Part shown: positions 1 through 21,633 of the stretch, piece after piece
Layout of the letters: every line of letters starts with the position of its first letter
How positions within the stretch are numbered: the stretch's first letter is position 1
Sequence record: MT446416.1
Strand: one strand, 5' to 3'
DNA length: 21,635 nucleotides
Notes under the pieces: model-generated
What the model was told of the DNA's origin: nothing
Database searches by the model: none
The model's input: the letters and a program-made list of their open reading frames with translations, nothing else
Made by a program: the position numbers and the translations under genes

Positions 1-375
1 GCTATTATTATCGATATACACCTTCACTCCACTTTCAAGATAATCATTTTCTTTGGAGTTGAAGTTTCTAATAGCAAACTTGACTCCATTTGTTGTATCC
101 GTGAATACATATCGTTCAGCACCGTAGAATGTTCTACCACGAAATAAACTGCCGTCTTCCCACTTCCAACGACTGGAATCATAATCATTAACGTAATCAA
201 TGATTAATGGTAGCAAAGGGTGTTTGCTCAATTTATATTTTGCTTCTAACAGAACACGACGATCTTGATCTGTATTGATACTATCTTTAAGTGAAAAACT
301 TTTTGATATAATTTTAAAGATAATTTCATGCCAAATTAAAGTACTGTTTTGTTTTCCAACTGGGCCAAAAAACAT
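1..375 (-). CDS. Hypothetical protein, 3' end off-window; paralog of 388..954
   Basis: Not in ORF track. Open from ATG at 375 (GAGGA 6 nt upstream) to the window edge: MFFGPVGKQNSTLIWHEIIFKIISKSFSLKDSINTDQDRRVLLEAKYKLSK...SRW, which aligns with KSPSLKAEFKTDDDRKALIEMKYMLSK...PRW of the adjacent gene. Confidence 0.85.
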   Translation of the reverse strand, partial: MFFGPVGKQNSTLIWHEIIFKIISKSFSLKDSINTDQDRRVLLEAKYKLSKHPLLPLIIDYVNDYDSSRWKWEDGSLFRGRTFYGAERYVFTDTTNGVKFAIRNFNSKENDYLESGVKVYIDNNS

Positions 376-387
376 ATTCATTCCTCA

Positions 388-954
388 TTAATATAAATCA
401 GTAATGTCTTTGTATGCATTAAACTGTTTTTGTTGTAATGAAAGTTCATTGAGTTTAGTTACCATTTTATCTACACCGATACGTGTATAGAAAATAATAA
501 ATGAATCTAAATTGCCTAGAGTAATTCTTGAACTGAAATTTGAAAGTTTTCTTGCATAAACATAAATTTCTTCTTCACTTGGTAAACGTTTCTCAATCAG
601 CAAGTTTTCCACAACATTCGGCTCATAAACAATCTCGAACTCTACGCCTATCACAGTATCTTGAATGATATCAGTATATGAACCACCGAAAAAAAACTCT
701 CTTGGTTTGGTTCTCCAACGAGGACTAAATGGGTCAGATGCGTATTCTTTTACAAATTTGTAAAAGGACATTTTACTGAGCATATACTTCATCTCAATTA
801 GTGCTTTGCGGTCATCATCAGTTTTAAACTCTGCTTTGAGCGATGGACTTTTACACAGTAACTTAACTAAATTGTTGTACATCTTTAATGTACGTTGGTC
901 TTTCATTTCTTTGATTTTGTGACGCTTTGGTGGTGGTAGTAAAGATTTGACCAT
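388..954 (-). CDS. Hypothetical phage protein (188 aa)
   Basis: Long ORF with strong SD (CAGGAGG), own sigma70-type promoter, and an adjacent paralog. Confidence 0.9.
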   Translation of the reverse strand: MVKSLLPPPKRHKIKEMKDQRTLKMYNNLVKLLCKSPSLKAEFKTDDDRKALIEMKYMLSKMSFYKFVKEYASDPFSPRWRTKPREFFFGGSYTDIIQDTVIGVEFEIVYEPNVVENLLIEKRLPSEEEIYVYARKLSNFSSRITLGNLDSFIIFYTRIGVDKMVTKLNELSLQQKQFNAYKDITDLY

Positions 955-977
955 AATTTCCTCCTGTATTTTCTAGT

Positions 978-1006
978 ATTATACACATAAAAGAAAAGCC
1001 CGTCAA
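978..1006 (-). promoter_or_regulatory. Sigma70-type promoter for 388..954
   Basis: TTGACG (1006-1001), 17-nt spacer, TATAAT (983-978). Confidence 0.85.
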
Positions 1007-1017
1007 TAGACGAGCTT
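988..1017 (-). terminator. Intrinsic terminator after the tail-like gene cluster
   Basis: AAGCTCGTC-TATT-GACGGGCTT (one G.U pair) followed by TTCTTTT, just after the stop at 1025. Confidence 0.8.
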
Positions 1018-1024
1018 AAAATTT

Positions 1025-3754
1025 TTAATGCCAACGTGTACCAGAGCTTGAAGGAACACCAGAACTTGCAGGGATAGCAGAACCACGCTTGGTTGTACTA
1101 GGTCTGTATGTCAAGAATCGTGTTACCTTTTCAGTATCAATTGACGTGATACTCGTACTTCCAGTAACAATATCACCTACGTATACGTTTGTCAATGTCT
1201 CATCAAGAAGAGTTGTACTGATAACGTATGCCGCTTTTCTTGTGTTACGGTTCATTTGAATGTAAAGATAAAAAGTACTGTTAGCTGGGTTAGTTTTAAT
1301 AGTACTTAATTCTATATTTTGAATCGCTAATCTATCAAACATACCACCAAGGAATACCGGAACTTCACGGGTGAAGTACACAGTGAAACCTTCAGCAACA
1401 TCTTGTGAAACTACTACGATTTTATCTTGTACAGTTCCTGAACCATCAATCAACCCATCCATCTGTGCTGATGTTGTCCCAAAGAGACTAAACACTGCTT
1501 TGGTTTGATAATCTGAATCTTGTAGATGATAGTATCCAAATCCAACACCTGGTATAACTCCGTGCTGGAATGCATTGCCATTATCTATGTAGCTGGATGA
1601 CATAAAACGGTTAGATGTAATCAAACCATTCACTGTTTTAGCAATCATCAATTTGAATTGAGCATTACCCGGTTGTGAAAACTGATGAACTGCATCAACA
1701 CCAATATAACCAAAACCAGAATATTTAGCAACAGTTAGACCTGTACAGCGTTTCATATAGGCTTCGGTTACAATACCTGTTACAGAATTAAGTGTTTCGT
1801 ATCTAGAACTCACCATAGTCGCAGAACTAATATTGGTTCCTGAAACAGTGACATCAACTTCAGAATATATTGCATAACCTTGGTTATTGCCTAAGTTATA
1901 TGCAGAAACCACCGCAATAGATTTTGAGAAAGAACTATCTGGTACATAATATAAAGCAATTTTACCAGAAAATGCTCCTACTATTCCAATATTAGCAAGT
2001 ATTTCTTGTTTTAATGTTTCCAGAACATTATCATCAATTGTATAAGAACCATCAAATTCTAAAGTATCTGGGTTAAACAAACCACCACTTGTTTTGTATA
2101 CACCTTCAATGAATGATGTCCCATAACATTTAACTGAACCGTCAGTATCAATTAGTGAAATCATACCTGTATATTTGAAATCATCACCAAGACGAATTCG
2201 ATTAGCTTGTGGAGCAAAACCATTAAGTGTTGTATTGTTTTGTACTGAATTGAACTGGAAGGTTGGATCAGTACCAATTTCAGAAAATACTGTATTGTTA
2301 TAACCATATGACTCACCTTCATATGTTCCAGAACATGCTAACAGTACTTTACGTTTATCAATAAAACGTGTTCCTAAAAGGTTTTCACCTACTGCACTAC
2401 CATATGTTGGGGCAACGTTTACAAATTTGGAATTGTTCGCTTTACGAGTACTGGCAATCCAACTATCATATGGTGTTCCTGTTACGTTGTAAACCTGAAT
2501 ACCATAGGTTTCAGATGAACTCCAACGAGCACGAGTGCTGAATACTAAACCGTCATAGGTTTGGCATATAGAACCAACGTTACCTAATAGTGGAACACCT
2601 AACTGTGTACCCATGAAGTTATTCATCTCAATTGCAAATGGGTTTGTTAGTGTGAATCCATCAACATCATTATATCCCGCAGCTATTGGTGCTCTACTAC
2701 TTCCATCAATTGATAATGATTTAGAGTTGATAGTGTAAACAAAACTAAAACCACTAGCATAAACAGTACTAATATATAGATTTGATACTAAACGGTTAGT
2801 TGGGAATAATGTAATTCTAATCTTTGATAAATCGGGACTTACGTTTGCTTGTATATTATAATCTGTATAATCTGAATATTCAACTCGTGTAACTGGTGAA
2901 GTGCATTCAAATAATGAATCACTGCTAGTTCCAACTGAATATAATCTTTCATAAATTTTCAAATTATTAGCACTTGTGTAGTTAACACTTCTTAAGGTTT
3001 GACCAGAAAAACCAGTAACCTTAGCAAAAGTACTCATAGTACCATCTTTAATACTACTTGTATCAACAGTATATAATGTTAAAGCCAAACCATAGTTTGC
3101 TATAGTAGTGTCTTTGCACCACACAAATACTTTATCATTAACGATATGTGCATATAATGGTTTATCTGTACCAAATGCTGTACCAGCGATAGAAGCGTGA
3201 ATATGTGCAACTTCGTTAAATGTACCATTTGTTAAAGTGAAAATATAATTACTTGCACTTGATAGACTAACTAGCAATTCATAACCATTCGTTCCGATGA
3301 ATTGTTTAACATTTTCAGTACTTGGAAGAATTCTAGGATGATATTTTGATGTAGTACTGATAACACTACTTTGTGTTAGTACATCAATATTACGTAAATC
3401 ACGAATAAATGCGTAGTAATATCCTTCAGTACTACCATTTGTACCAGCACGTAAAACCACACCAGTACCATCATCTTCGACTATTGTTGGTTGCATACGG
3501 TATACATTTGAAAGCGATGTTGCACCTTCGTATGAACCATTAACGTTTAAAGGTAGATAATCCATTTCCCCTATACGGGAGATTGGTAACATATCAAGTA
3601 TTTTTTGAACTTCTGATCTTTTATAAATTGGATAGTCAACAATACCTGTATTTGCGTCTGGTGCTGTACCATTAAAAGTACGCATAGCGTACTTTCCACC
3701 AATTGCCAAATTTCCAAGTATAGCAGCACTACCAATGATGCGTTTGGATGACAT
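1025..3754 (-). CDS. Putative virion tail/baseplate fibre protein (909 aa), paralog family member
   Basis: Large S/T/G/N-rich beta-type protein. Shares the N-terminal motif (DAN...E...LPIS.IG) and the C-terminal ~120 aa (VVSQDVAEGF...GSAIPASSG.PS..G..W) with the two adjacent genes. Resembles the phiKZ gp131-like paralog family (from memory, unverified). Confidence 0.7.
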   Translation of the reverse strand: MSSKRIIGSAAILGNLAIGGKYAMRTFNGTAPDANTGIVDYPIYKRSEVQKILDMLPISRIGEMDYLPLNVNGSYEGATSLSNVYRMQPTIVEDDGTGVVLRAGTNGSTEGYYYAFIRDLRNIDVLTQSSVISTTSKYHPRILPSTENVKQFIGTNGYELLVSLSSASNYIFTLTNGTFNEVAHIHASIAGTAFGTDKPLYAHIVNDKVFVWCKDTTIANYGLALTLYTVDTSSIKDGTMSTFAKVTGFSGQTLRSVNYTSANNLKIYERLYSVGTSSDSLFECTSPVTRVEYSDYTDYNIQANVSPDLSKIRITLFPTNRLVSNLYISTVYASGFSFVYTINSKSLSIDGSSRAPIAAGYNDVDGFTLTNPFAIEMNNFMGTQLGVPLLGNVGSICQTYDGLVFSTRARWSSSETYGIQVYNVTGTPYDSWIASTRKANNSKFVNVAPTYGSAVGENLLGTRFIDKRKVLLACSGTYEGESYGYNNTVFSEIGTDPTFQFNSVQNNTTLNGFAPQANRIRLGDDFKYTGMISLIDTDGSVKCYGTSFIEGVYKTSGGLFNPDTLEFDGSYTIDDNVLETLKQEILANIGIVGAFSGKIALYYVPDSSFSKSIAVVSAYNLGNNQGYAIYSEVDVTVSGTNISSATMVSSRYETLNSVTGIVTEAYMKRCTGLTVAKYSGFGYIGVDAVHQFSQPGNAQFKLMIAKTVNGLITSNRFMSSSYIDNGNAFQHGVIPGVGFGYYHLQDSDYQTKAVFSLFGTTSAQMDGLIDGSGTVQDKIVVVSQDVAEGFTVYFTREVPVFLGGMFDRLAIQNIELSTIKTNPANSTFYLYIQMNRNTRKAAYVISTTLLDETLTNVYVGDIVTGSTSITSIDTEKVTRFLTYRPSTTKRGSAIPASSGVPSSSGTRWH

Positions 3755-4370: not shown

Positions 4371-7067
4371 TTACCAATTGATTGTTCCTGTTTGTGACGG
4401 TAGACCATAACTAACTGGGAATGAAGAACCAGCAGCTTCAAGCGACGCACCGAAAATATCCAATCTTGAACGTTTTTGTATGTTAACATTTGATATTTGT
4501 AGTGAGTTTGTTTGTATAGTACCTATCCAGAAAATATTATATGCTGTAGTACCAGTCTCTGAAATAACATCAGTTGTTATTACATATTTTGCATTACCTT
4601 GTTCCATTTTAACATATACATGAAATAATGTGTTTGCCGGATTAGCCTTAACTGTAGTTAAGTTTATACTAGTAATAGGTAATGTAAATGCTTTACCAGA
4701 AAGAATTACTGGAGTTTCTTCTGTGAAGTACACAATAAAACCTTGAGCAACGTCTTGTGAAACTACGTTAATCGGTGCACCTTGAGCAGTCCAGTTATTA
4801 TAATCAGCAATTGTAGTACCACATTTTTGGAAAGTCATTTTGTTTACATAGTCTATTGCTTGGAAATAACCAAAACCAATACCAGGTAAAGCTGCTGGTT
4901 GAATACCTTGCTCATAACTTGCATGTGAACCACTGATAATAAAACTATCAAATTGTGCAGTTGCTTTTGTTACATATGCTCTGAATTGGTGTGTGTTTGT
5001 ATTACCAATAGTTGGGTGAGATAATGGGTCAGAACCACCTATGAAGTAGAAAGAACCACCATCATATATTGTTAAACCAACAGAAGACGATGCAAAACTA
5101 CCATTACCATTTGGTGTAAAGTTACTTCCGTAAACGTTTTCTAGTACTAAACGCTTGAAGGTAATTGTAGTGATATTACCTGAACGTGTATTCACATTCA
5201 CTTCAGCAATTCTAATATAGTTCTGATATGTATTTGTAACTGTACTTAGCATTACGAATGCAGGTATATCAGTTTGTTGTGGAACAAACAATGTCATATC
5301 TTTATAAGCAGCAGGAGATAAGTTCCAGTCGCTTAGTACTTTAGCGTATTCAGCATTTCTGAAATTATCAAGTACTGATTGAGTAACACTAATGATACCA
5401 GTTCCGTTCATATTTTTATCATATGATAGTGATTGGGAATATCTCTGACCTACCATGAATATCCCACCATTTGTAGTAACATTATTACCACTAATGGAAC
5501 TAATAAAAACTCTGTTGTTAGTGTTATCTGTCACATTAGCACGTTCTGTTGTTGGCTCATAACCTTGTATGGTTCCACGTGATAAAGAATTAAACGTAAA
5601 GTTAGGAGTACTTTTATGAACTGCATAAGATGGACGGAATGCACCAGAACCAGTTGAACGAGAATACTGTTTAGTACTGTTCCCTGGAAGCAATTCTACT
5701 CCGTTAATAAAAGAACCAACTGCTGAACCAAATGAAGGACGGACTATACCATTTCTGAAATCAGTTGAAATGTTCGCACGTACATTGATCATGCTATATA
5801 TTGATTGCGAAGTAAATTTAGCTTTCTGCATAAGTAATGGTTCTGCTAAGTTTGGACATGCAGTACAGAATACATCACCTGTATTCAGATAATAATATGA
5901 ACTGTAAATATTTCTTGCACCGTTATGGTCATATAACGGATCTTTGTTGAGAACATTACCAGTAGCAACCAATGCCGAACCTGTGTTTGTGACAACCAAT
6001 GGTGCAGCAAATGTACCAATATCGTTCCCAGTATCCAAGTTACATTGTTTAGTACTCATGTTAAAATTGAAACTATAACTATGCTGTGGTCGGGTATTGT
6101 AGTTTGCCATAGTGAACCATGCGTCACCATTCATTCTGAATCGGAAGTTCTGCGTTCCTGGCTCCTGAGCAACATATAAATCGATAGATGTCATATAAAT
6201 CCCCATACCAGCCAAATTTTGTGGTACATAGACATAGGGCTTATCAGCTATATTAGTTGAGTTAACATGGTCAGTAATGATTATATTATTCTGAGAAGTA
6301 TATGTAGTATTGTAAAAAGTTTTTGTTGTCCACCCCGTGATTCGGGTAGCAGTATAAGTACCGTTTGCAATATTCAACACAACACGAACAACAACAATCT
6401 GTAGTTTGTTATTTTCATTAAGGACGTTGAATACATAAACTGAACCGTCTTCTGCCATCATAGCATACTCAATCCCACCTTCAGGTGAAATATCAGCTTG
6501 GTTCACAAAAAGACCACTATGTTGTGTATCATCCAATGTACCATTCGTTACTGATATAAACAACCCATTAGTACTGGTAGATGTGTCATTGTAACGACCT
6601 AACAGTATTTTTGAATCGGTATTGTATAAACCAATAGCAACACGGTTTGCCCCGAAATAGCCAGGCTTATACTGACGGCTTGTATTAACAGTACGACTCA
6701 TATCGGTAACTGATAATGCGTTCGCTAGGTAAGAATAAAACAAACCTTCAACACTACCGTTTGTACCACTACGTAATAGTACTAATGTGCCATCGTTTTC
6801 TAAAAGTATTTTGTTTCTACGTTGGGATTGGTTTTCTGATGCACCATTAAAATCACCAGATACCCCAGCAGGTAGATAGTTATGTGTACCATAATGCGAG
6901 ATTGGAAGTAAACTAATTACATCAAGTAATTCTTCTTTGGAATATGTATCAATTTCCATATTACCATTAGCATCAAATACTTGATCATTGATGCCCTGTA
7001 CTGTTCTTTTCCCTTTAACTGTCACATTATGAGTGACGTCTAAGCCACCATATATTTTCTTTGACAT
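4371..7067 (-). CDS. Putative virion tail/baseplate fibre protein (898 aa), paralog family member
   Basis: Clear paralog of 1025..3754 (LRSGTNGSVEGLFY vs LRAGTNGSTEGYYY, VVSQDVAQGF, GSSFPVSYGLPSQTGTINW). Preceded by a late-promoter-like octamer. Confidence 0.7.
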   Translation of the reverse strand: MSKKIYGGLDVTHNVTVKGKRTVQGINDQVFDANGNMEIDTYSKEELLDVISLLPISHYGTHNYLPAGVSGDFNGASENQSQRRNKILLENDGTLVLLRSGTNGSVEGLFYSYLANALSVTDMSRTVNTSRQYKPGYFGANRVAIGLYNTDSKILLGRYNDTSTSTNGLFISVTNGTLDDTQHSGLFVNQADISPEGGIEYAMMAEDGSVYVFNVLNENNKLQIVVVRVVLNIANGTYTATRITGWTTKTFYNTTYTSQNNIIITDHVNSTNIADKPYVYVPQNLAGMGIYMTSIDLYVAQEPGTQNFRFRMNGDAWFTMANYNTRPQHSYSFNFNMSTKQCNLDTGNDIGTFAAPLVVTNTGSALVATGNVLNKDPLYDHNGARNIYSSYYYLNTGDVFCTACPNLAEPLLMQKAKFTSQSIYSMINVRANISTDFRNGIVRPSFGSAVGSFINGVELLPGNSTKQYSRSTGSGAFRPSYAVHKSTPNFTFNSLSRGTIQGYEPTTERANVTDNTNNRVFISSISGNNVTTNGGIFMVGQRYSQSLSYDKNMNGTGIISVTQSVLDNFRNAEYAKVLSDWNLSPAAYKDMTLFVPQQTDIPAFVMLSTVTNTYQNYIRIAEVNVNTRSGNITTITFKRLVLENVYGSNFTPNGNGSFASSSVGLTIYDGGSFYFIGGSDPLSHPTIGNTNTHQFRAYVTKATAQFDSFIISGSHASYEQGIQPAALPGIGFGYFQAIDYVNKMTFQKCGTTIADYNNWTAQGAPINVVSQDVAQGFIVYFTEETPVILSGKAFTLPITSINLTTVKANPANTLFHVYVKMEQGNAKYVITTDVISETGTTAYNIFWIGTIQTNSLQISNVNIQKRSRLDIFGASLEAAGSSFPVSYGLPSQTGTINW

Positions 7068-7100
7068 ACATATCCCTTGTAATTTAGATATTAGTTACTG

Positions 7101-7108
7101 TATTTATG
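7101..7108 (-). promoter_or_regulatory. T4-like late promoter variant CATAAATA upstream of the structural cluster
   Basis: One mismatch to T4 late consensus TATAAATA. Lies between the nrdG terminator and the first structural gene. The same octamer occurs at 9422 and 11216, both non-coding. Confidence 0.6.
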
Positions 7109-7116
7109 AATGTACT

Positions 7117-7139
7117 AAAAAAGCACCCATTGGGTGCTT
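7117..7139 (-). terminator. Intrinsic terminator after nrdG
   Basis: AAGCACCC-AAT-GGGTGCTT followed by TTTT. Confidence 0.8.
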
Positions 7140-7143
7140 GTGT

Positions 7144-7614
7144 TTAAAAGTCTTTATTTTTATATAAAATTCGTTGGTTATTTGAACCACGAAAAGGTAA
7201 TGTTAAATTCTTTTCTTCTGAAACAAATTTACCATCAACTAATACATCTAAGTACTGAAGAATGTCTTTAGCATGATTATCCATAATCTCTTCTAACGTA
7301 TATCCACTCCAGCACCAAATAGTTTTATTGGGATAAGTCTCTTTTACAATCTTACATAGTTCTAAAATTGTTTCTATGTTCTTTTTCATTAGAGGATCTC
7401 CACCAAGGAGGGATAATCCACTAACGTAAGGCTTACTGAGTTCAGCTAAAATTATATCAATTGTATCAGTACTGAACTCTTGTCCACTTCGGTAGTCCCA
7501 TGCATGTTCTGAGTAACATCCGGGGCATCCATGTGAACAACCGCTTACGAAAAGTGAACATCTAACACCTTCACCATTTATCAAATCATCTTTGAAAATT
7601 GCCATATAATTCAT
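7144..7614 (-). CDS. nrdG: Anaerobic ribonucleotide reductase activating enzyme (radical SAM)
   Basis: NGEGVRCSLFVSGCSHGCPGC (CxxxCxxC), GLSLLGGDPL, DVLVDGKFV, RGSNNQRI. Confidence 0.97.
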   Translation of the reverse strand: MNYMAIFKDDLINGEGVRCSLFVSGCSHGCPGCYSEHAWDYRSGQEFSTDTIDIILAELSKPYVSGLSLLGGDPLMKKNIETILELCKIVKETYPNKTIWCWSGYTLEEIMDNHAKDILQYLDVLVDGKFVSEEKNLTLPFRGSNNQRILYKNKDF

Positions 7615-8540
7615 TTAATATTCCTTACTAGGTTATTTAAAATCTCCACATGGTTTTCATCATAACGTATTCTGATAAACTGTATATTATTGTCTATACA
7701 GAACTTTGTTTTTATATTGTCATTAATTTGTCTATTAATAAATTCTTTCTCCCCTCCCCAATGTTCAAAAATTTCATAATGTTGTTTACCATCATATTCT
7801 ATTAATATATTATAATCATTCAAATATATGTCAAATGGTAATTTTTGTTTGTTGTAACATTCAGGGAATTTTTTTTCTCGTTCAAAAGATATATTATTTT
7901 TTGTCAATATTTCAATTATATCATACATAGCTTTTGATGTGCTAGTATGTAACGCACACTCTGGGCATCCTCTTCCTGAGTTTAATGATGTTGGTGTAAT
8001 ATTAAATTCATGACCTTTTTCACAAATTGCAATACTAGGAGTTCTTACATTTATATATTTGAATTTATTAAAATTGTAATCTTTGAATTTATTATTTGAT
8101 TTTATTTTTGATATAAAATAATCTGAATCAATATTATGTTTTCTCCCATTTTTCATTTTACAAAGTTCACATCCAGTATTTCCTCTCAAGAAGGTTCTTG
8201 CTCTCAATGTTTTGGATTTTTTATGGATATTACACATAACTGTTATATTATCAACCATGCGAGTATAATCACTGATTAGTGTGAATTTATCTCCATAAAT
8301 TTTATTCATTTCTTGTATGAATTCATATTTTGATTTTGTTATTTTATTATCAGAACATTTTTTACAGCCCTTCCCACTTAAAAGTATATTTGGTGTTGAA
8401 TAAAAATCCGTTTTACATATGTTACAGTGGACATGTATTTTACATTGTGACCCGCCGTATTCATTTAAAAATGTGAATTTTTGTCCATGTATTAACAAAA
8501 TCTTATTAATGAATTCTTCATGTGTAAGTTTACGTGGCAT
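7611..8540 (-). CDS. Free-standing putative homing endonuclease: three Zn-binding repeats plus C-terminal Vsr/DUF559-like PD-(D/E)xK nuclease (309 aa)
   Basis: Three ~63-aa repeats each ending GCxxC (GCKKC, GCELC, GCPEC), then LPFDIY...ILIEYDGKQHY. Start moved from 8597 to ATG 8540 because of SD AAAGGAG. Stop overlaps the nrdG start (ATGA). Confidence 0.8.
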   Translation of the reverse strand: MPRKLTHEEFINKILLIHGQKFTFLNEYGGSQCKIHVHCNICKTDFYSTPNILLSGKGCKKCSDNKITKSKYEFIQEMNKIYGDKFTLISDYTRMVDNITVMCNIHKKSKTLRARTFLRGNTGCELCKMKNGRKHNIDSDYFISKIKSNNKFKDYNFNKFKYINVRTPSIAICEKGHEFNITPTSLNSGRGCPECALHTSTSKAMYDIIEILTKNNISFEREKKFPECYNKQKLPFDIYLNDYNILIEYDGKQHYEIFEHWGGEKEFINRQINDNIKTKFCIDNNIQFIRIRYDENHVEILNNLVRNIK

Positions 8541-8550
8541 TATTAAAACT

Positions 8551-8585
8551 CCTTTGACATTTGTGATGTTTATAAATGCCAAAGG
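8551..8585 (-). promoter_or_regulatory. RBS-sequestering hairpin containing late-promoter-like TATAAACA, upstream of the free-standing endonuclease
   Basis: CCTTTGGCATTT pairs with AAATGTCAAAGG (12 bp, one G.U); the 3' arm includes AAAGG of the SD. TATAAACA at 8574-8567. Confidence 0.7.
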
Positions 8586-8597
8586 GTATATCCTCAT

Positions 8598-8924
8598 TTA
8601 ATTATCGTCTGGTAATTCATCTAGTATTGCACTCACTATTTCAACGAGAACATCACCATGACATGATTTTGGTTTACAGAAACAACCAAGACGTTTCCCT
8701 GCTAATTCAAGTAAATCATCAATTTTAACTTCGCCATTAGAAATACGTTCAATTATGTATTCTCTGAACTTTTCGATTGATTCTTCCCTTGTAGCAACAA
8801 TGAACTCGGCCTTAGTCTGTTTATCATTGATATGGGTAAATGGGTTACCCCATTTAGACCCACGACCAATGTACACATCATACGGTTCTTTGTATTTGTT
8901 AACCACAATTGGCTTTAAATCCAT
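8598..8924 (-). CDS. DUF4326 family protein
   Basis: YIGRGSKWGNPF and LGCFCKPKSCHGDVL motifs. ATG at 8924 overlaps the grcA stop (TGATG), SD AAGGA. Confidence 0.85.
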   Translation of the reverse strand: MDLKPIVVNKYKEPYDVYIGRGSKWGNPFTHINDKQTKAEFIVATREESIEKFREYIIERISNGEVKIDDLLELAGKRLGCFCKPKSCHGDVLVEIVSAILDELPDDN

Positions 8925-9283
8925 CAAATTTCCTTTGTAAAGGTACGAGAAATTACATCATCTTGTTGTTCTTTTGTTAGTGAATTGAAACGAACAGCAT
9001 AACCACTAACACGAATAGTAAGTTGCGGATACTTTTCTGGATTGTTTTGTGCATCAATGAGTTGTTCTTTAGATAAAACATTTACATTCAAATGTTGACC
9101 ACCCTCAATAACTGGTTCATGTTTGACCTGTACATCACGTAGAACCTCACCATCAAAAGTACTCAATAGTACTTCATCATCTTCGGAAAAAGTTTTAGAT
9201 ACTACAATTTTTACAACATCATCTTCTTTTAGAAAAATAGTACCACGATGTTCACCTGACATTACCTGTTTAGCTTCTAACAT
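8924..9283 (-). CDS. grcA: Autonomous glycyl radical cofactor (GrcA/YfiD-like)
   Basis: GGQHLNVNV...[34 protein letters not shown] glycyl-radical signature. Confidence 0.95.
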
Positions 9284-9320
9284 ATATTTCTCCTTAATTT
9301 TATTTCAGTGTTTTTTTAAT

Positions 9321-9329
9321 ATTCTATCA
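9321..9329 (-). promoter_or_regulatory. Possible extended -10 promoter for grcA
   Basis: TGA-TAGAAT about 40 nt upstream of the ATG; no convincing -35. Confidence 0.4.
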
Positions 9330-9350
9330 TCAAACGATATTTTATAAACA

Positions 9351-9382
9351 AATGAACAAAAAAAATAGATTCTTTGTTCATT
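9351..9382. repeat. Inverted repeat (10-bp arms)
   Basis: AATGAACAAA (9351-9360) and TTTGTTCATT (9373-9382). Confidence 0.75.
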
Positions 9383-9404
9383 TTTTCATTTCATAATTAG
9401 TTTA

Positions 9405-9439
9405 CTCGATTTAATTTTAAATATTTATGTTAAATCGAG
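9405..9439. repeat. Inverted repeat (10-bp arms) with CATAAATA in the loop
   Basis: CTCGATTTAA (9405-9414) and TTAAATCGAG (9430-9439). No U-tract on the coding strand. Confidence 0.75.
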
Positions 9440-9446
9440 ACAATTA

Positions 9447-10310
9447 TTATAAATGGCGAATTCTCTGAATCACTTCATCTTGCTTTCCTTTATTGAATGG
9501 GCGACTATTTGGTGCACTAAGATATCCGCTAACTCTTCGAATAACTGACATAGATTTTTCATCTCTATTATTACAAACTGGACAGTGGAAACCGTTTTTA
9601 TCGACGCTGAATTCACCTTCAAAATTACATTTATGACAATGATCAACTGGCTGGTTTATTCCAAAATATGGAATTTTTTCATAGGCATAATTGATTAATG
9701 TTTCAAGTGCTTGAATGTTGTTTGTTAAGTTTGGTGTTTCGACATAGCTAATATTACCACCATTGCTTAGATAAGCAAAGTTTTCCTCATAATCCCACTT
9801 TTCAAAAGCAGAACTTTCAACCCATACTGGTTGATGGAATGAATTTGTAATATAATTACGTTTTAGTACTGAAGGGTACTTAGATTCGATGCAACGTGCA
9901 AATTTGTAGCAAAGTGACTCTGCTGGGGTTCCATATAGACTAAAAGCTATGTTACTCTCTTTTTTGAACTCATCGCATTTAACTTTCATATAATTCAGTA
10001 CTGACATACAAAACTCCTTACTGATAGAACCAGTGAGGATTTCTGAACATTCAACAAGTCCAACATAACCAATACTAATACTAGCATAACCATTGTAAAA
10101 TAGTTTGTCAATAGTTTCTTCTGCACCTAAACGTGCTAATGCACCTTCCATGAACAAAATTGGATTCTGTTTCGCTTTAGTGCCTTTTAAACGCTCTACA
10201 CGGTTCATCTGAGCACGATATGCAATATTCATATGCTCATCTATCTTATCAAAAAACTCTCCATCTGAGGCACTTTCAAGAGCAATTAACGGTAGGTTGA
10301 TTGAGACAAC
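9447..10310 (-). CDS. nrdD: Anaerobic (class III) ribonucleotide reductase, exon 2
   Basis: Begins VVSINLPLIALES, which continues GRFNLG of exon 1. Contains SLYGTPAESLC, YITNSFH, Zn ribbon CHKC...CPVC and glycyl loop RRVSGYL. Confidence 0.95.
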   Translation of the reverse strand, partial: VVSINLPLIALESASDGEFFDKIDEHMNIAYRAQMNRVERLKGTKAKQNPILFMEGALARLGAEETIDKLFYNGYASISIGYVGLVECSEILTGSISKEFCMSVLNYMKVKCDEFKKESNIAFSLYGTPAESLCYKFARCIESKYPSVLKRNYITNSFHQPVWVESSAFEKWDYEENFAYLSNGGNISYVETPNLTNNIQALETLINYAYEKIPYFGINQPVDHCHKCNFEGEFSVDKNGFHCPVCNNRDEKSMSVIRRVSGYLSAPNSRPFNKGKQDEVIQRIRHL

Positions 10311-10354
10311 CATTTGTACCTTCACTTTCATGAAGGATTAGAGTACACCATACT

Positions 10355-11194
10355 CTAACGAAGAGGAAATGACATATAACCAAGTTTATTTGATAGTTCT
10401 TTATATCCAGAACCGTTATTGATATTTGCAACAGTTTTTCTTCCTACATTTAAACATTTTGCAATTTCGGAATAATTTTTATCTGTATTAATTAGCATAT
10501 CAATAATCTTAGAAACTGTTTTAATAGAATGACGTTTTGATGAATTTTGTGGTTTAAAAATTGGGTATTCAAGTGATTTATTTCGATAGATTACTCCATT
10601 ATTAACATTACAAATGGTGACATTTGAAACATTATATATTTTTGCAATTTCTATACTAGAAACACCATTTCTTAATAACTCATAAATTGAATCTATATTA
10701 TCTTCAATCTTATTTCTTTTGTTATCTCTAATAGGGTATGTTTCATTTATTTGATACCAAGTTTCGCCACAATTTATATCACTAACACAGCCGTATGGGA
10801 CATTTAAAGTTTTTGCTATTTCTACAAATGAAAGATCTTTATGTGATTTGATATATTCTATAATTTTGATAGCATCAATTTCAGTTATTTTACTTCCATT
10901 GAAGGTTTGGTTACCACCTAATGTTGAGTTGTAACCATTCTTATAACTATCATAAATTTCAATATATTTTATTTCTTCATCATTAAGATTATTTAAATCA
11001 ATATTAGTTTTTAAAATTTGAAATGTAAAATTTTCAAAGCCAAATTTTTTAATAGCTTTACTAATACATGATTTTTCATCATTGTTGTTACAGTGTTCCA
11101 CCCATCTTTTCATCGGTGGATATAAAACAGTTTGTCCAATATAAACTTTATTAGTTACTATACACTCTATTTTATATATGCTTCCTTTTCTCAT
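10355..11194 (-). CDS. Intron-encoded GIY-YIG homing endonuclease with three C-terminal HTH repeats
   Basis: SIYKI...VYIGQT...KRW..H...E..YI...GYNSTLGG nuclease domain, then three repeats of EIAK..NV.....DIN.G. SD GGAGG. Confidence 0.92.
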   Translation of the reverse strand: MRKGSIYKIECIVTNKVYIGQTVLYPPMKRWVEHCNNNDEKSCISKAIKKFGFENFTFQILKTNIDLNNLNDEEIKYIEIYDSYKNGYNSTLGGNQTFNGSKITEIDAIKIIEYIKSHKDLSFVEIAKTLNVPYGCVSDINCGETWYQINETYPIRDNKRNKIEDNIDSIYELLRNGVSSIEIAKIYNVSNVTICNVNNGVIYRNKSLEYPIFKPQNSSKRHSIKTVSKIIDMLINTDKNYSEIAKCLNVGRKTVANINNGSGYKELSNKLGYMSFPLR

Positions 11195-11200
11195 TATATA

Positions 11201-11227
11201 TCCTCCATAAAATATTATTTATGGAAG
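11201..11227 (-). promoter_or_regulatory. RBS-sequestering hairpin with late-promoter-like CATAAATA, upstream of the intron endonuclease
   Basis: CTTCCATAAA-TAATAT-TTTATGGAGG forms a 10-bp stem burying GGAGG. CATAAATA at 11223-11216. Confidence 0.8.
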
Positions 11228-11483
11228 TTTTAATATTAGAGTCACGTATTATACTCGTTGAACCTTCCACCATTCTAAAATGATAGCTTGGCTGCTGATT
11301 TCCCATTTTTTGTGCATATGAACTGATTTACAACTTTTCATATATCCATAATTCTTTTTTCTACTCTCGTAACATTCACGTTTATCTATTAAGATTGCGT
11401 TGTAGTGATTATGGCTTTAGGGGGTTCCAGCATGTTAACGTGTTTGCTATTACTGCTCACGCAGCAAAGGGGCATGTATGTCT

Positions 11484-12425
11484 ACCCAAGTTGAAACGAC
11501 CGTTATATTGCTCATTTCCATTTGAATCTTCCCATTTTCCTAAGAATGAACGACAGCCCATCGGTGTTACAGCAGTGCTATTACTTCCCGTCACTTTGTG
11601 ATTTAATGGAACTGAAACAAAGTCTGGGTAGATTCTCTTCGATGCACAACGCATTGCCAACTGTTTCATGTCATAGTTGCAATCATCGCTATTCATGTTG
11701 ATTCCGTCCTGTAAAAAGAAAATTACTTTAGGAAACACTGGAGTAATCTTATCTTTGCCTAAACCATTCTCATGTACTTTTAAGTACTGTTCAGTGATTA
11801 ATTTGCCAAATTTTGAAGTATTCAGTCCTAAACTAAGAGAAATGAATGCTGCTTGTCCGTTTGTACTAATCATTGAATTTGTCTGGTAAAGTAAGGTTTG
11901 ACACCCATCATAGACTTCTTTTCGTAATTCTTCCTCAATGTATTCAGTACTGAGATTATATGCCTTTTGCTTCGCTAATAGCTTATCCCACGACTTTTGG
12001 ACGTAAGGTTCAAGACCAACGTCAATATGAGCCAATGATTGACCACCGTACTGGGAACTAGCAACAGCCTGAACAATTTGTGTCAGTACTGTACATGCTA
12101 CACTAAAACTCTTTGGTTCTTCAATTTTTGCACAACCAATGGTAAATCCATTTTTTAGCATATCTGGGTAGTTAACCAAGCAACAGTTAGTTAATGGGCT
12201 GATATAGTAGTCTAAATCATGAATGTGACCATAACCATCATTATGCCACTGCATTAGCTCCTTTGGAATAACATCTTGTGAATAATGTTTAGATAGGATA
12301 CCAGCAAGTAAATCCCTGTGTGTATTGACGCATTTCGCATCTTTGTTTGCATTTTCATTTGTAAGATCAGTATTGCTCTGATTTAGGAAATTTGTTACGT
12401 CAGTATATAATTTATCTAATTGCAT
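11484..12425 (-). CDS. nrdD: Anaerobic (class III) ribonucleotide reductase, exon 1 (spliced product ~601 aa, no ATP cone)
   Basis: NENANKD, HIHDLDY, TNCCLV, SSQYGGQS, FPKVIF, YPDFVS, MGCRSFL (thiyl Cys) and GRFNLG. Start at MQLDK (12425) chosen from SD AAGGA. 314 + 287 codons. Confidence 0.95.
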
Positions 12426-12486
12426 TTTACTTTCCTTGTATTTTGAAATCATCTGGGGGTGAAGTTATTTAACATCACCAGACACC

Positions 12487-14097: not shown

Positions 14098-14462
14098 GTA
14101 TGAATAATTTCTTTGACCCCATATTCCAGAATTGCCAACGTACAAATCTCACAAGGCTTGGCAGAAACGGGAATTCCATCTTTACTAACCCGTGCAATTA
14201 ATAATGTGTGAACATCAGCCCTTGCTGCGAGTAAACAGCTTATTTCAGCATGTAACCATATTGCATCATTTCTTCCAGCTTTAACTGCAAAGTTTTTCTG
14301 CTTAGGGTGAGTCCGTGTATAAGAATTGGTGCGAGTTGCCAGTACTCGACCTTTTTTATCAAGTGCACGAGCAATAATACGATACCGTTTATAATTACCT
14401 ACTTGTTCAATCGGTGGCATCTGGCGTAATTCTTCGATTAGTTTCTCCAATTTACTATTCAT
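14094..14462 (-). CDS. Cytidine/dCMP deaminase-fold Zn protein
   Basis: LHAEIS ... KPCEIC (HxE ... PCxxC) catalytic signature. Confidence 0.85.
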   Translation of the reverse strand: MNSKLEKLIEELRQMPPIEQVGNYKRYRIIARALDKKGRVLATRTNSYTRTHPKQKNFAVKAGRNDAIWLHAEISCLLAARADVHTLLIARVSKDGIPVSAKPCEICTLAILEYGVKEIIHT

Positions 14463-15073
14463 AAGTCTAAGTCTATACCCTTTTCAATAGATTTCTCTAG
14501 AACCCAAAGTTTACATTCTTCACTCTCCAAATGCATCTTTGCCTCTTTCTGTTGTTCTATTGTACAATACTTTATAAATTCACGCAAGGCTTCTATTGTA
14601 CTTTTTATATTTTTTATGTCTTCGAGAATTGTTTCTTTGGCTTCGGCATCAATTACAGATGAACTCCACCCGTGACGTTCTTCCCAAACTGTTTTTGTTG
14701 GATTGTAAATTGATGATGTAGAAATGACCACATGGATCTTATTAAACGTATCGTCTGCTTCTTGTTGGGTGTAATCACCATAAGTGTTTAGCACATTTTT
14801 GTATAGTTCATCGATTGCCTCATCATAAGTATCACCACCGCAATCTAACTCATAATCATGTGCTTGTACCCATTCATCATCTTGCTCAATGTACATAGGT
14901 GAGATGAATTCTACCCAAAATTGTGTCTTTGTATTCAGAGCTTTAAATGATTCAATGCGGTTTGTGATTGGACACACATCATGTGGTTCGATATCAATCC
15001 TTGGGGGAACCATATCTCTGTTGATGAATTTAGGATGGCCCAAAATCCACCAGTACTTTTCTGATGTAGTCAT
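14459..15073 (-). CDS. Hypothetical phage protein
   Basis: Long ORF; probable start MTTSEK (15073) after GGAG. Confidence 0.85.
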   Translation of the reverse strand: MTTSEKYWWILGHPKFINRDMVPPRIDIEPHDVCPITNRIESFKALNTKTQFWVEFISPMYIEQDDEWVQAHDYELDCGGDTYDEAIDELYKNVLNTYGDYTQQEADDTFNKIHVVISTSSIYNPTKTVWEERHGWSSSVIDAEAKETILEDIKNIKSTIEALREFIKYCTIEQQKEAKMHLESEECKLWVLEKSIEKGIDLDL

Positions 15074-15087: not shown

Positions 15088-15115
15088 AAAAAGTACCGCC
15101 CACTGTGGCAGTACT
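15088..15115 (-). terminator. Intrinsic terminator
   Basis: AGTACTGCC-ACAGTG-GGCGGTACT followed by TTTT; the G.U pair works only on the minus strand. Confidence 0.75.
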
Positions 15116-15119: not shown

Positions 15120-15479
15120 TTAAATGTAACGTTTCTTTTTATAATCATACCCTACTGCTTTGTAAAAGTCAAACAACGAAGCATGTTCAAATGTAGGTAA
15201 TAGATCATATGGGTGCTGATAGTTCGCAATACCAACAACTGTCAGCATCGTTTCAGACGTTCGTGTGTTATCACTATCCCATTCATCTAAACGCCAAAGT
15301 GAGCAAAGTACCTCTCGTTCATGTTGCTTACCCAGAAAGAATTCAGCTTCACGGTCACGAAATGCACCTACACTGATAGTACTTTTGTACCAGTCTTCTT
15401 CACCATAAGCTGGCATACGGATAATGTGTTTTTCTTGAGCTTCACCAAAGCGATGAAGAAATGCCACATAATCACTCAT
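15120..15479 (-). CDS. Hypothetical protein (119 aa)
   Basis: Co-oriented ORF with ATGA overlap to the upstream gene. Confidence 0.8.
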   Translation of the reverse strand: MSDYVAFLHRFGEAQEKHIIRMPAYGEEDWYKSTISVGAFRDREAEFFLGKQHEREVLCSLWRLDEWDSDNTRTSETMLTVVGIANYQHPYDLLPTFEHASLFDFYKAVGYDYKKKRYI

Positions 15480-15646
15480 AATTTATAACCCATTACAGGT
15501 TTGGTATGATCCGGTTCGTAAGACTTTTCAGTACTGAACCCTCTGAAATTACCACGACCTGGCTTCGGACAAGCCATCCCTTCTACACCGTGCTTACCCT
15601 GAACCTTTCCGCAGTTTTTGCATTTGTATCCAATAACTTCTTTCAT
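15476..15646 (-). CDS. Small putative Zn-binding protein (56 aa), missed by the ORF track
   Basis: MKEVIGYKCKNCGKVQGKHGVEGMACPKPGRGNFRGFSTEKSYEPDHTKPVMGYKL*. ATGA overlaps at both ends, SD AAGGA, CxxC-x6-H-x6-C. Confidence 0.8.
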   Translation of the reverse strand: MKEVIGYKCKNCGKVQGKHGVEGMACPKPGRGNFRGFSTEKSYEPDHTKPVMGYKL

Positions 15647-18063: not shown

Positions 18064-18076
18064 AATATACCTATAT

Positions 18077-18100
18077 AAAAATAGGGAGCATTAGCTCCCT
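18077..18100 (-). terminator. Intrinsic terminator
   Basis: AGGGAGC-TAAT-GCTCCCT followed by ATTTTT. Confidence 0.75.
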
Positions 18101-18648
18101 TTGTATTGATGTTTACGTTTAGTACTGTATTTCCAGCCAGTACTGTGTCTTGTTCTGATATCGTCCCAATACGATGGTAGTGAACGCATCTTACGTCTTC
18201 CACGTATTTCAGGTTCCCCCTCATCCTTCAGTACTGCACAAGCCATACGACGCTCTTGTTGGGTCTTAGGACGTTTGTATCGGGAGTGGTTATGTTTGTA
18301 CATATACGAACGCTTGTGTCGCCATTCAGTGTCACGAGCATTTCGTTTATGCTCCCAGTACTCATTATAGAGTATCATGTATTCACCCATAAGTAAATCA
18401 GGAGATACAAGTAATCCTTTTTCAGTACAAAGATAATAACCTACGAACTTTTCTGGATACATTTCGTAATAGAAACGGTTCTTCCAAAATGTTTCACGAT
18501 TCTTTTTGTTGAATTCAGCTAAATCGAATTTCATCTTACTGTGGAAACGGTCTATACCGTCATGTTCCGCAATGTACTCTAACAGATTATCAATAATCTC
18601 AACTTTACCTGAATCATGGTACAACGTAAATGTTTGGTCAAAAAACAT
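18091..18648 (-). CDS. Hypothetical protein with very basic C-terminus (RPKTQQERR...LPSYWDD...WK...KRKHQYK)
   Basis: 185-aa ORF, strong SD AAAGGAG, own terminator. Confidence 0.88.
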   Translation of the reverse strand: MFFDQTFTLYHDSGKVEIIDNLLEYIAEHDGIDRFHSKMKFDLAEFNKKNRETFWKNRFYYEMYPEKFVGYYLCTEKGLLVSPDLLMGEYMILYNEYWEHKRNARDTEWRHKRSYMYKHNHSRYKRPKTQQERRMACAVLKDEGEPEIRGRRKMRSLPSYWDDIRTRHSTGWKYSTKRKHQYKGS

Positions 18649-19126: not shown

Positions 19127-19128
19127 TA

Positions 19129-20568: not shown

Positions 20569-20571
20569 AAA

Positions 20572-20604
20572 ACATCCTTGAGTTATGAGTACATCCTTGT
20601 ACTC
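20572..20604 (-). promoter_or_regulatory. Tandem CsrA/RsmA-type binding sites in the phoH leader
   Basis: GUACAAGGAUGU in hairpin GAGUACA-AGGA-UGUACUC matches the CsrA SELEX consensus RUACARGGAUGU. A second CAAGGAUGU is the SD. Confidence 0.7.
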
Positions 20605-20629
20605 GACTAATGGTTAGTGACTCGGAATA

Positions 20630-20932
20630 TTACATGCTCGGTTCGTATTCAACATAACATCTTGAACCACGAGCCTTTTCCTCCCAGCATTCCTGGTAAA
20701 CTAGTTGACCAATTGATACTGGATCTCTTGATAACCCATTACGAACTTCACCAGTACTGGTTTTATAAGTAAATGAGCATTTATTTTCATTACATTGACC
20801 TAATCCCGTTACAGTCGCTGTATTGTAATGAATATTATAACGTTTAGTGTTCTCATGATATGAACTGAACCACAGAACACCTATACCTAACAGTGTTGTG
20901 CAAATAAGACTCTTGATATGTGTTGAAATCAT
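20630..20932 (-). CDS. Hypothetical membrane-anchored protein
   Basis: N-terminal hydrophobic helix followed by a Cys-containing soluble domain; ATGA-type overlap upstream. Confidence 0.8.
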   Translation of the reverse strand: MISTHIKSLICTTLLGIGVLWFSSYHENTKRYNIHYNTATVTGLGQCNENKCSFTYKTSTGEVRNGLSRDPVSIGQLVYQECWEEKARGSRCYVEYEPSM

Positions 20933-21249
20933 AGTGCATTAAACCCATTGGTTAAGTAAGTTTCAATATTAACTTTTCCAACTGGATTACTACTATGTAC
21001 ATAGTATTTAAATGGTTCTTTAATATTATGCTCAAACATATAATCAATTAGAAATTTGGCAAAAGTGTATCCAGTTTTCTCATCTGTACTCAAGTCACCC
21101 AAGTCATGGTCAAATGAGACAAATGCTGGAATTCCATTTTTGATTACGTATTCACATGCACTTTCGTAGTCACGACACAATACCATCTCTTGGTCAGGAT
21201 AATATTTTTGATAATCGCGAATATCATCCAAGAACATTGAGTACGACAT
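20929..21249 (-). CDS. Cyclic-phosphate-processing receiver-domain (cREC-like) protein
   Basis: MFLDDIR ... VSFDHDLG ... TGY ... VHSSNPVG motif set. Confidence 0.75.
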   Translation of the reverse strand: MSYSMFLDDIRDYQKYYPDQEMVLCRDYESACEYVIKNGIPAFVSFDHDLGDLSTDEKTGYTFAKFLIDYMFEHNIKEPFKYYVHSSNPVGKVNIETYLTNGFNAL

Positions 21250-21258
21250 TTTAAACTC

Positions 21259-21633
21259 CTATAGATAGCTGATTAGTAAGTTTTCTTTTTGTACAAGATA
21301 CTCCAATTCTTGTTTCGCAGTTCCGATGAAGTTCTGTGTCATAAGATTATTATATCCTGCTTCTCGATTTTGTCCCTTAGAATAACGTGAGATGTGACAT
21401 AAATTTACACCCGCCACCTCTGCACTAGCATGTTTGCCATATGCATAATTATCACGAAGTTTTTTAAGTTCAGCATAAGTCATTTCATAACTATAGCTAT
21501 GGGTGTGTCCCTCTGGAAACAATTCAAGTGATTTTAATGGAGACAGGCGACTTTTGTCAATGATATAGTTCATTTCTTCTTGAACTTCACGCTGTAACGC
21601 ATCTTCTAATGACTTATCAGTACTTTCAACTGT
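21259..21633 (-). CDS. Nudix hydrolase, 5' end off-window
   Basis: Frame is open from the window edge through the annotated ATG at 21573: (G)TVESTDKSLEDALQREVQEEMNY, a Nudix box (REUxEE). Confidence 0.8.
   Translation of the reverse strand, partial: TVESTDKSLEDALQREVQEEMNYIIDKSRLSPLKSLELFPEGHTHSYSYEMTYAELKKLRDNYAYGKHASAEVAGVNLCHISRYSKGQNREAGYNNLMTQNFIGTAKQELEYLVQKENLLISYL

Follow-up and report, generated by a model that had tools for sequence, protein, structure and literature searches.

An iterated AGTACT palindrome in Escherichia virus TH47 and other Rak2-like jumbo phages

The stretch of DNA analysed here (the window, 21,635 nucleotides) has the same sequence as bases 1-21635 of the GenBank record MT446416.1 (Escherichia virus TH47), which comprises 352,450 bp without annotation and belongs to the genus Asteriusvirus (PBECO4/121Q group) of the Rak2-like jumbo myoviruses. 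All real genes of the window lie on the minus strand and, by comparison with annotated PBECO4, include nrdG, a split nrdD and genes for a PhoH-like ATPase, a WGR-domain protein and a Nudix hydrolase; the GC content is 34.3%. The subject of this work is the palindromic hexamer AGTACT, with its 8-bp form CAGTACTG, which is spread over the whole window and had been taken, in a preliminary description made from the letters alone, for a phage counterpart of HIP1 (highly iterated palindrome 1) of cyanobacteria. No mention of AGTACT, of CAGTACTG or of an iterated palindrome in Rak2-like phages was found in the open-access papers searched.

Genome-wide figures for TH47 rest on bases 1-350,000 of the 352,450 bp. 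Genes were called by a simple longest-open-reading-frame procedure, which gave 556 open reading frames (ORFs; 90% coding, 498 on the minus strand). Relatives were sampled as stretches of 20-50 kb, and all sample sizes are listed in Table 1. Expected counts were obtained from dinucleotide-preserving shuffles for the window and from dinucleotide content for the relatives. For the synonymous shuffle, codons were permuted within each gene, so that each protein and the codon usage of each gene remained unchanged. For the retention test, orthologues of the window genes were codon-aligned and AGTACT was compared with frame-matched control hexamers. The Pfam census covered 354 TH47 proteins of 95-420 amino acids (aa).

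Abundance and placement of AGTACT

The window carries 52 copies of AGTACT (2.4 per kb), whereas 100 shuffles averaged 6.3 and never exceeded 14; by a wide margin it is the most over-represented palindromic hexamer of this DNA. CAGTACTG occurs 12 times against a shuffle mean of 0.2. The hand counts of the preliminary description (about 52 hexamers and 12 octamers) and the positions listed in it proved exact, and the two 12-mers that it placed near 15527 and 20750 are present there. Fifty of the sites lie within minus-strand ORFs (27 in frame 0, where they read Ser-Thr, 6 in frame 1 and 17 in frame 2), and the other two are intergenic.

Over 350 kb of TH47, 909 copies of AGTACT were counted where 103-118 are expected, which corresponds to about one site per 385 bp, together with 203 copies of CAGTACTG against 3.6 expected. 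These two words, together with the shorter words contained in them, rank first among the 5-, 6-, 7- and 8-mers of TH47. Among the 16 words of the form NGTACN, strong amplification was seen solely for the palindrome with A and T at the outer positions (8.8-fold); TGTACA occurs about as often as expected, and GGTACC and CGTACG do not occur at all. The hexamer is preceded by C in 47% and followed by G in 44% of cases, and weak symmetric outer flanks, T-rich and then A-rich, lead to the consensus TTC-AGTACT-GAA, the flank information being about 0.00-0.04 bit past position ±1 of the hexamer. Since no sequence is conserved beyond about 6 bp on either side of the core, AGTACT is not a dispersed repeat element, and repetitive extragenic palindromes or bacterial interspersed mosaic elements (REP/BIME) and miniature inverted-repeat transposable elements (MITE) were ruled out on this ground. 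With 572 copies of GTACTG and 565 copies of CAGTAC on one strand, there is no orientation bias of the kind seen for Chi, for uptake signal and DNA uptake sequences (USS/DUS) or for FtsK-orienting polar sequences (KOPS); a bias in orientation is confined to the ACT-free island described below, where it follows from the ban on ACT. Coding sites fall in frames 0, 1 and 2 in 377, 143 and 252 cases, respectively, and 137 sites are intergenic; the density is 3.9 per kb between genes and 2.45 per kb in coding DNA. No helical phasing of the sites across the genome was seen in coding DNA.

Within genes, codon choice is overridden. In the coding DNA of the window, the synonymous shuffle gave 11.8 ± 2.9 sites (maximum 21 of 500 shuffles) against 51 observed; genome-wide it gave 216 ± 14 against 772 observed in coding DNA (z = 39), and for CAGTACTG 18 against 166. 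Taken together, synonymous and codon-order shuffles remained 3.6-5.9-fold below the observed count. Ser-Thr dipeptides are written AGT-ACT in 377 of 727 cases (52%), where 109 are expected from codon usage, and the compatible contexts of frame 1 (136 of 364) and frame 2 (252 of 554) carry the site in 37-45% of cases. An origin from codons, dipeptides or a protein motif was rejected by these shuffles. This bears out the preliminary description, which had argued from sites in all frames and between genes that no single peptide motif explains them, and which had named codon-preserving shuffles as the result that might overturn its claim.

S-T, V-L and Q-Y dipeptides, which can host the site, are themselves 1.3-1.5-fold over-represented in TH47, so that the proteome, too, has been shaped by the pressure for AGTACT. 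The saturation (the share of compatible contexts that carry a site) lies between 0.38 and 0.56 in every 25-kb bin; the pressure is thus nearly even along the chromosome, and graded selection from the genome ends, considered as a source of the density gradient, was rejected.

Rak2-like phages and the fate of single sites

In each of the Rak2-like genomes sampled, no hexamer is more over-represented than AGTACT (Table 1), and with an enrichment of about 9-14-fold in eight related phages, besides that over the 350 kb of TH47, the signal is not limited to the window. Asteriusvirus and RaK2 strongly prefer C and G next to the hexamer, Munch, fHe-Yen9-04 and GAP32 less so, and the density of AGTACT is equal among genera whose DNA no longer aligns. 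The signal tracks the phage clade across hosts as unlike as Escherichia and Xanthomonas, an argument for a cause encoded by the phage. A host-derived signal was rejected on the count in E. coli K-12 and the diversity of the hosts, and a general trait of jumbo phages or of T4-like phages on the counts in T4, PA5oct and Atu_ph07. AGTACT is also missing, against 6-10 sites expected, from phages that are unrelated or only distantly related, namely the sampled stretch of PA5oct, Lactococcus phage PhiL.6 and Parabacteroides phage PM708P4; this is the usual avoidance of such sites, and it sharpens the contrast with the Rak2-like phages.

Table 1. AGTACT counts in the sampled genomes and retention of TH47 window sites in orthologous genes
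Genome	Sample	Observed	Expected	Sites retained	Fraction retained	Control fraction	p
PBECO4	23 kb	58	6.3	34/44	0.77	0.41	9e-7
Turkey5	50 kb	149	16.5	21/40	0.53	0.20	4e-6
Salmonella phage Munch	50 kb	123	13.5	9/32	0.28	0.10	0.005
Cronobacter phage GAP32	50 kb	139	11.9	7/34	0.21	0.08	0.02
Klebsiella phage RaK2	50 kb	133	10.9	6/21	0.29	0.14	0.07
Yersinia phage fHe-Yen9-04	50 kb	138	10.1	5/36	0.14	0.08	0.13
Xanthomonas phage XaC1	20 kb	72	7.1				
T4	50 kb	4	9.4				
E. coli K-12	50 kb	3	4.8				
Pseudomonas phage PA5oct	20 kb (100,001-120,000)	0	6.1				
Agrobacterium phage Atu_ph07	20 kb	1	2.4				

In the aligned orthologues, AGTACT is retained about 2-2.6 times as often as the control hexamers, with a smaller excess at greater distances. 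At genus-level distance most sites have moved and the density is unchanged, which indicates turnover under a maintained density; in several of the losses the Ser-Thr pair is kept and has been recoded synonymously, from AGT-ACT to TCA-ACN. These comparisons show conservation of single sites above background, combined with a slow turnover of the set as a whole.

The 3,193 bp of the window that cannot be aligned to PBECO4 hold 2 AGTACT sites against 8.7 expected (P = 0.008), so that the word is lacking from new or mobile DNA. This DNA includes a GIY-YIG homing-endonuclease insert in nrdD and an ORF with a DUF4379 match (Table 2). The nrdD insert measures 1.1 kb, contains an ORF for a homing endonuclease with GIY-YIG and helix-turn-helix domains and has no AGTACT; since PBECO4 does not have it, the insert probably represents a mobile intron like that of T4 nrdD. 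The 328-aa product of the DUF4379 ORF matches the treble-clef zinc finger of this family, and the ORF has a GC content of 26%, contains no GTAC and is specific to TH47 in the comparison with PBECO4. DUF4379 matches were found in four separate regions of TH47, which suggests a mobile or expanding family.

Words that differ from AGTACT by one mismatch are not depleted, being mildly enriched at 1.1-2.1 times the dinucleotide expectation; the transition neighbours stand at 1.3 (AGTATT/AATACT) and 1.6 times (AGCACT/AGTGCT). Because the deamination neighbours are not depleted, a drive resembling very short patch (VSP) repair of the Dcm/Vsr type was rejected. The evidence shows that AGTACT is maintained by selection and is neither a compositional nor a mutational by-product. 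The proposal of the preliminary description, that the phage itself maintains a HIP1-like palindrome, is thereby supported in its core by the tracking of the clade, the purifying constraint on sites, the override of synonymous codon choice and the lack of sites in mobile DNA.

Table 2. AGTACT sites, AGTACT-free gaps and associated genes in the window
Feature	Position	Strand	Basis or remark
AGTACT set, n = 52	340..21624		motif count and ORF frames
Intergenic AGTACT	340..345		downstream of minus-strand ORF 388-954
ORF with DUF4379 match	7611..8597	-	328 aa
AGTACT-free and GTAC-free gap, TH47-specific DUF4379 ORF	7623..8597	-	not alignable to PBECO4
Two AGTACT 10 bp apart	9158..9173		in ORF 8924-9283, frames 0 and 2
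nrdD, both halves with insert	9447..12452	-	split gene
nrdD, C-terminal half	9447..10331	-	Pfam NRDD positions 280-562
AGTACT-free gap, mobile insert splitting nrdD	10311..11483	-	not in PBECO4
Homing-endonuclease ORF in nrdD insert	10355..11194		GIY-YIG and helix-turn-helix
nrdD, N-terminal half	11457..12452	-	Pfam NRDD positions 1-283
Two CAGTACTG (11945, 12084)	11945..12091		in nrdD N-terminal half; sites in a conserved core gene
Intergenic CAGTACTG	15110..15115		between ORFs 14459-15073 and 15120-15479
12-bp palindrome TTCAGTACTGAA	15527..15538		extended consensus form, 20 copies genome-wide; motif search and flank profile
Three-site cluster (18121, 18139, 18230)	18121..18236		two are CAGTACTG; inside ORF 18091-18648
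12-bp palindrome ACCAGTACTGGT	20750..20761		sole copy in the genome, CAGTACTG core; inside ORF 20630-20932

Early promoters, terminal repeat and AGTACT-free regions

Site density peaks at 88-110 kb of TH47 (61-75 sites per 10 kb), where the genes are short and lie on the minus strand and sigma-70-type promoters are numerous. In TH47, AGTACT begins 7-8 bp upstream of the -10 hexamer in 17 cases, in the arrangement TTC-AGTACT-G-TATAAT, and other promoter copies abut, flank or overlap the -35 box. In the homologous early region of PBECO4, the combination AGTACT-N1-2-TAnAnT was counted 27 times against 4-12 at control spacings. Pairs of intergenic sites favour separations of 11-13 and 21-23 bp, corresponding to one or two helical turns. 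A dyad site on the promoter with phased neighbours, as in the operator of a dimeric regulator, was found solely in the early region and the terminal repeat of Asteriusvirus.

For phage fEgEco12, direct terminal repeats of 20,993 bp have been confirmed experimentally (PMC13070987), and the counterpart in TH47 lies, by homology, at about 87,465-105,970. The terminal repeat (18-21 kb), on which the early sigma-70 promoters are located, makes up the bulk of the AGTACT hot zone, and the high density runs on for about 4 kb past the physical end. At the physical left end, the first 1.7 kb are non-coding and hold 17 AGTACT sites, among them copy pairs spaced by 13 bp, as well as a consensus early promoter with AGTACTG abutting the -10 hexamer. 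A small tandem array with 13-bp spacing is located near the physical end (104,389-104,433), and the final 100 bp up to the terminus contain three copies of TTCAGTACTG. A search of this ORF-poor, site-dense terminal stretch for tRNAs and Rfam families gave no match.

Two long-resident regions of TH47 are free of AGTACT, at 71.8-80.1 kb and at 82.7-87.4 kb, both of which are found at 83-92% identity in 34 records. In the first (72,111-80,217, about 17 minus-strand genes; the island), the trinucleotide ACT occurs once on the sense strand (AGT on the plus strand) against about 160 expected. The counterpart in PBECO4 (4680-12300 of the sampled locus) is free of ACT over 7,620 bp, 156 times the mean spacing, and that in phage A4 (9574-16555 of the sampled locus) over 6,981 bp; the one island protein compared between A4 and TH47 is only about 44% identical. 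The ban on ACT covers every context and frame (Thr codons: ACA 66, ACC 16, ACG 16, ACT 3). The island is the only strong trinucleotide desert in TH47, and one of its borders lies inside a gene.

The AGTAC core is kept in the island at 5.5 per kb, as AGTACA on the sense strand (TGTACT on the other strand) and in all three frames; that it is held in ACT-free DNA speaks for selection and not for a mutational process. Sixteen Ser-Thr pairs of the island are one synonymous change (ACA to ACT) away from AGTACT, with zero sites in TH47, PBECO4 and A4. The island shows two apparently separable constraints, the ban on ACT and the enrichment of AGTAC, and the ban implies a putative strand-specific reader of the trinucleotide. 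Possible causes of the ban would be transcripts that evade an ACU-specific endoribonuclease, or a primase-type enzyme. The island proteins (71,818-80,082, minus strand) share the motif E-x-[LFY]-F-Q-x-S-L and include several paralogues, with PHROG 19795 represented three times; this paralogous family is restricted to Asteriusvirus (34 records). They gave no Pfam match and no functional match in Pfam or PHROGs.

The second region (82,700-87,400), which is found throughout the genus, consists of small genes in tandem, about 20 in number, that encode apparently paralogous products of 65-91 aa; it is devoid of AGTACT and shows no enrichment of GTAC (12 observed against 39 at the neighbouring density). 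The start of this run coincides exactly with the inner boundary of the terminal repeat.

Candidate readers and competing explanations

Avoidance of palindromes by phages, invoked in the preliminary description, is pronounced in TH47. GCGC has no copies where 200 are expected, and 23 of the 64 palindromic hexamers, including GGTACC and CGTACG, are absent as well (4-44 expected each), with three more at 1-3 copies. GCGC is missing from every Rak2-like sample and occurs normally in PA5oct, Atu_ph07, T4 and E. coli. RaK2 is exceptional in carrying GGTACC 9 times against 3.3 expected. AGTACT is the site of the type II restriction enzyme ScaI (AGT^ACT) and of its E. coli isoschizomer Eco255I, and its nine-fold amplification therefore runs counter to the strict avoidance of such palindromes.

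Among the Pfam matches listed for the 354 TH47 proteins, there is no ScaI-type or other type II nuclease and no MutH, Vsr, ParB or MazF/PemK RNase. The matches listed include a TnsA-like PD-(D/E)xK nuclease, GIY-YIG-like and HNH homing endonucleases, several DUF4379 paralogues and a phage sigma factor, none of which can be tied to AGTACT. The sole DNA methyltransferase signature in TH47 belongs to a 174-aa protein of the Dam family (PF05869; 48,196-48,720, minus strand), the gene of which adjoins a cytidylyltransferase gene and is syntenic across the clade. Identity to the TH47 protein is 83-97% in Asteriusvirus, 65-69% in RaK2, K64-1, Munch and 7t3, and 42-49% in XaC1, XbC2 and Eneladusvirus. 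For the genes around it, Pfam and PHROGs gave no functional match, and no TH47 homologue was found for the other methyltransferases of GAP32 and fHe-Yen9-04. PF05869 is present in about 2,200 phage records, and the nearest homologues outside the clade (45% identity) are those of PhiL.6 and PM708P4, each with 0 AGTACT against about 10 expected; the family as a sufficient cause of the signal was rejected on this account.

We consider the chances about even that Rak2-like phages possess in (C)AGTACT(G) a recognition word of their own, kept by selection and most likely read on duplex DNA by a two-fold symmetric, phage-encoded factor. The putative reader would most likely be either a DNA-binding protein or a DNA-modifying enzyme. 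Dyad symmetry, the joint need for both outer bases, the positions at promoters, the helical spacing, the tandem array and the concentration in the terminal repeat all fit a two-fold symmetric reader of duplex DNA, and the operator-like placement together with the terminal-repeat concentration points more towards a DNA-binding reader than towards repair. Such a reader would bind AGTACT as a dimer and, at the early promoters, would act as an operator-type switch, most simply by shutting off early transcription. The roughly 770 intragenic copies would serve a genome-wide role that requires phage DNA to be densely marked or coated, distinct from host DNA. This marking or coating of self is suggested by the approximately 40-fold density contrast with the host (about 0.06 sites per kb in E. 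coli) and by the even saturation; it might be used, for example, in coating, compaction, packaging or protection.

Several points weigh against a symmetric reader of duplex DNA. For the operator of a transcription factor, an intragenic share of 85% and a spacing of coding sites near Poisson are odd; no cognate protein was found, and the sites are not confined to regulatory DNA. In other genera, the samples of which lie outside the early regions, no such promoter arrangement was seen. Since AGTACA seems to be enough in the island, strict dyad symmetry is not essential. The reader may also act on single strands or on RNA. Among the Pfam matches listed for the 354 TH47 proteins there is no obvious site-specific regulator, and about two thirds of these proteins have no family match. 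A wider proposal, which we put forward only tentatively, is that Rak2-like DNA carries two codes, namely AGTACT as a mark of self, with a reader that also switches early promoters, and a second code for a strand-specific trinucleotide reader that the block of about 17 genes evades.

It seems to us unlikely, although several observations would fit, that the signal is a HIP1 analogue in which the Dam-family protein PF05869, as an N6-adenine methyltransferase, marks AGTACT, with the methylated or hemimethylated site serving strand discrimination in repair, replication timing, packaging or protection and a high site density being selected in consequence. The gene carries the only DNA methyltransferase signature in TH47 and is syntenic across the clade, methylation would explain why a ScaI/Eco255I-type site is tolerated where 23 palindromes are purged, and one site per 385 bp resembles the density of Dam GATC sites in E. 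coli. RaK2 DNA, moreover, was reported to be resistant to many restriction enzymes, and the phage to encode two methyltransferases (PMC3622015). However, the nearest outside homologues reside in phages that lack AGTACT, the family is widespread among phages, the transition neighbours are not depleted, and the purging of GGTACC and CGTACG indicates that GTAC as such is not protected. EcoRI, HindIII, ClaI, NsiI and six other enzymes (ScaI and RsaI not among them) gave the predicted cleavage of fEgEco12 DNA, which excludes global hypermodification and indiscriminate or broad adenine methylation, and no MutH- or Vsr-type nickase is found among the Pfam matches listed. A strand-specific reader of ACT or (A)GTAC(T), that is, a primase-type start or an RNA signal which the palindrome would display on both strands, appears improbable. 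In the primase version, the template 5'-AGTAC-T-3' would yield the primer pppGUACU; primases such as those of T4 and T7 use trinucleotide sites with a cryptic 3' base and make primers of 4-5 nucleotides, AGTACT can be read as two inverted ACT words, and the island has lost ACT on the sense strand only while keeping TGTACT on the other. Yet A1 and T6 are jointly needed for the 8.8-fold effect, the symmetric preference extends to 8-12 bp, the ban on ACT and the enrichment of AGTAC are separable, the promoter copies lie upstream of the transcription start, which speaks against an RNA signal, and we know of no primase site that is amplified to this degree.

We likewise see only a slim chance that AGTACT is a functionless by-product of biased mutation or repair, be it VSP-like repair, biased gene conversion or template switching at palindromes. 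A drive of this kind could equally give high retention and density, mobile inserts without the motif would fit slow amelioration, and the Dcm/Vsr pair of E. coli is an example of a repair system that inflates its own site. Against these points stand the mild enrichment of the one-mismatch neighbours, the old and conserved ACT-free island and the 82.7-87.4 kb stretch, which were never converted, the phasing of sites with promoter elements and the lack of Vsr among the Pfam matches listed. An artefact of codon or dipeptide usage, a protein motif, a dispersed repeat or the assembly is given practically no weight and is already refuted: frame 0 (Ser-Thr) is indeed the commonest and codon usage favours AGT and ACT, but the shuffles fall short of the count, sites occur in all frames and are denser between genes, and the same signal recurs in independently sequenced genomes of six or more genera.

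A word read by a symmetric, phage-encoded factor, as preferred here, has partial parallels in several known systems. With HIP1 (GCGATCGC, cyanobacteria) AGTACT has in common an 8-bp palindrome with a stronger 6-bp core, about one site per 350-400 bp, sites in all frames and between genes, an influence on codon and dipeptide usage, conserved sites, restriction to a lineage and a suspected link to a methyltransferase with its target inside the palindrome, the specificity of the enzyme being putative in the case of AGTACT. The order-of-magnitude excess throughout the genome, the occurrence in all frames and in non-coding DNA and the conservation beyond neutral expectation are all of the HIP type. 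The word itself, however, differs from GCGATCGC, CGATCG has no copies in TH47, and the hosts are Enterobacterales and Xanthomonas; a different word in a different lineage makes the signal an analogue of HIP1 and not HIP1 itself. Unlike HIP1, it is found in a virus clade, is absent from the hosts, lies at early promoters and in the terminal repeat and persists amid a strict purging of palindromes. The operators of dimeric phage repressors (lambda CI/Cro, the tandem boxes of ribbon-helix-helix proteins of the MetJ/Arc type) resemble it in dyad symmetry, overlap with the -35 and -10 elements, helical pairing and the short array; they number a handful at promoters, whereas AGTACT has about 900 copies, 85% of them intragenic and under constraint. 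Chi (read by RecBCD), USS/DUS, KOPS and the sites of matS/SlmA/Noc, each with a dedicated machine as reader, are likewise short words far commoner in self than in foreign DNA that run through coding DNA, affect the proteome and are kept by selection or drive, but Chi, KOPS and USS/DUS are asymmetric and biased in orientation and matS sites are few, while AGTACT is palindromic, very dense and viral. Dcm/Vsr (CCWGG) is similar as a methyltransferase-linked system that raises the frequency of a short palindrome; it differs in that AGTACT shows no depletion of deamination neighbours, no listed match to Vsr and a far larger enrichment.

Iterated palindromes have gone unexplained in cyanobacteria for about 30 years, partly because those organisms are slow and hard to handle in genetics. 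A signal of this kind is now found in lytic phages, for which E. coli K-12 can serve as the host (Sharanji, for instance, was isolated on MG1655), so that its cause becomes directly testable, and the reader must be among about 550 phage genes. A restriction-type palindrome that is amplified nine-fold in DNA from which 23 others have vanished implies either a dedicated protection or a benefit that outweighs the risk of restriction. Its association with the terminal repeat and with early promoters suggests that it matters during the first minutes of infection, or else when a very large chromosome has to be handled without a phage nucleus. AGTACT further provides a compact marker for the Rak2-like clade in metagenomes. 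If true, either of the two proposed codes would represent a new kind of phage genome organisation.

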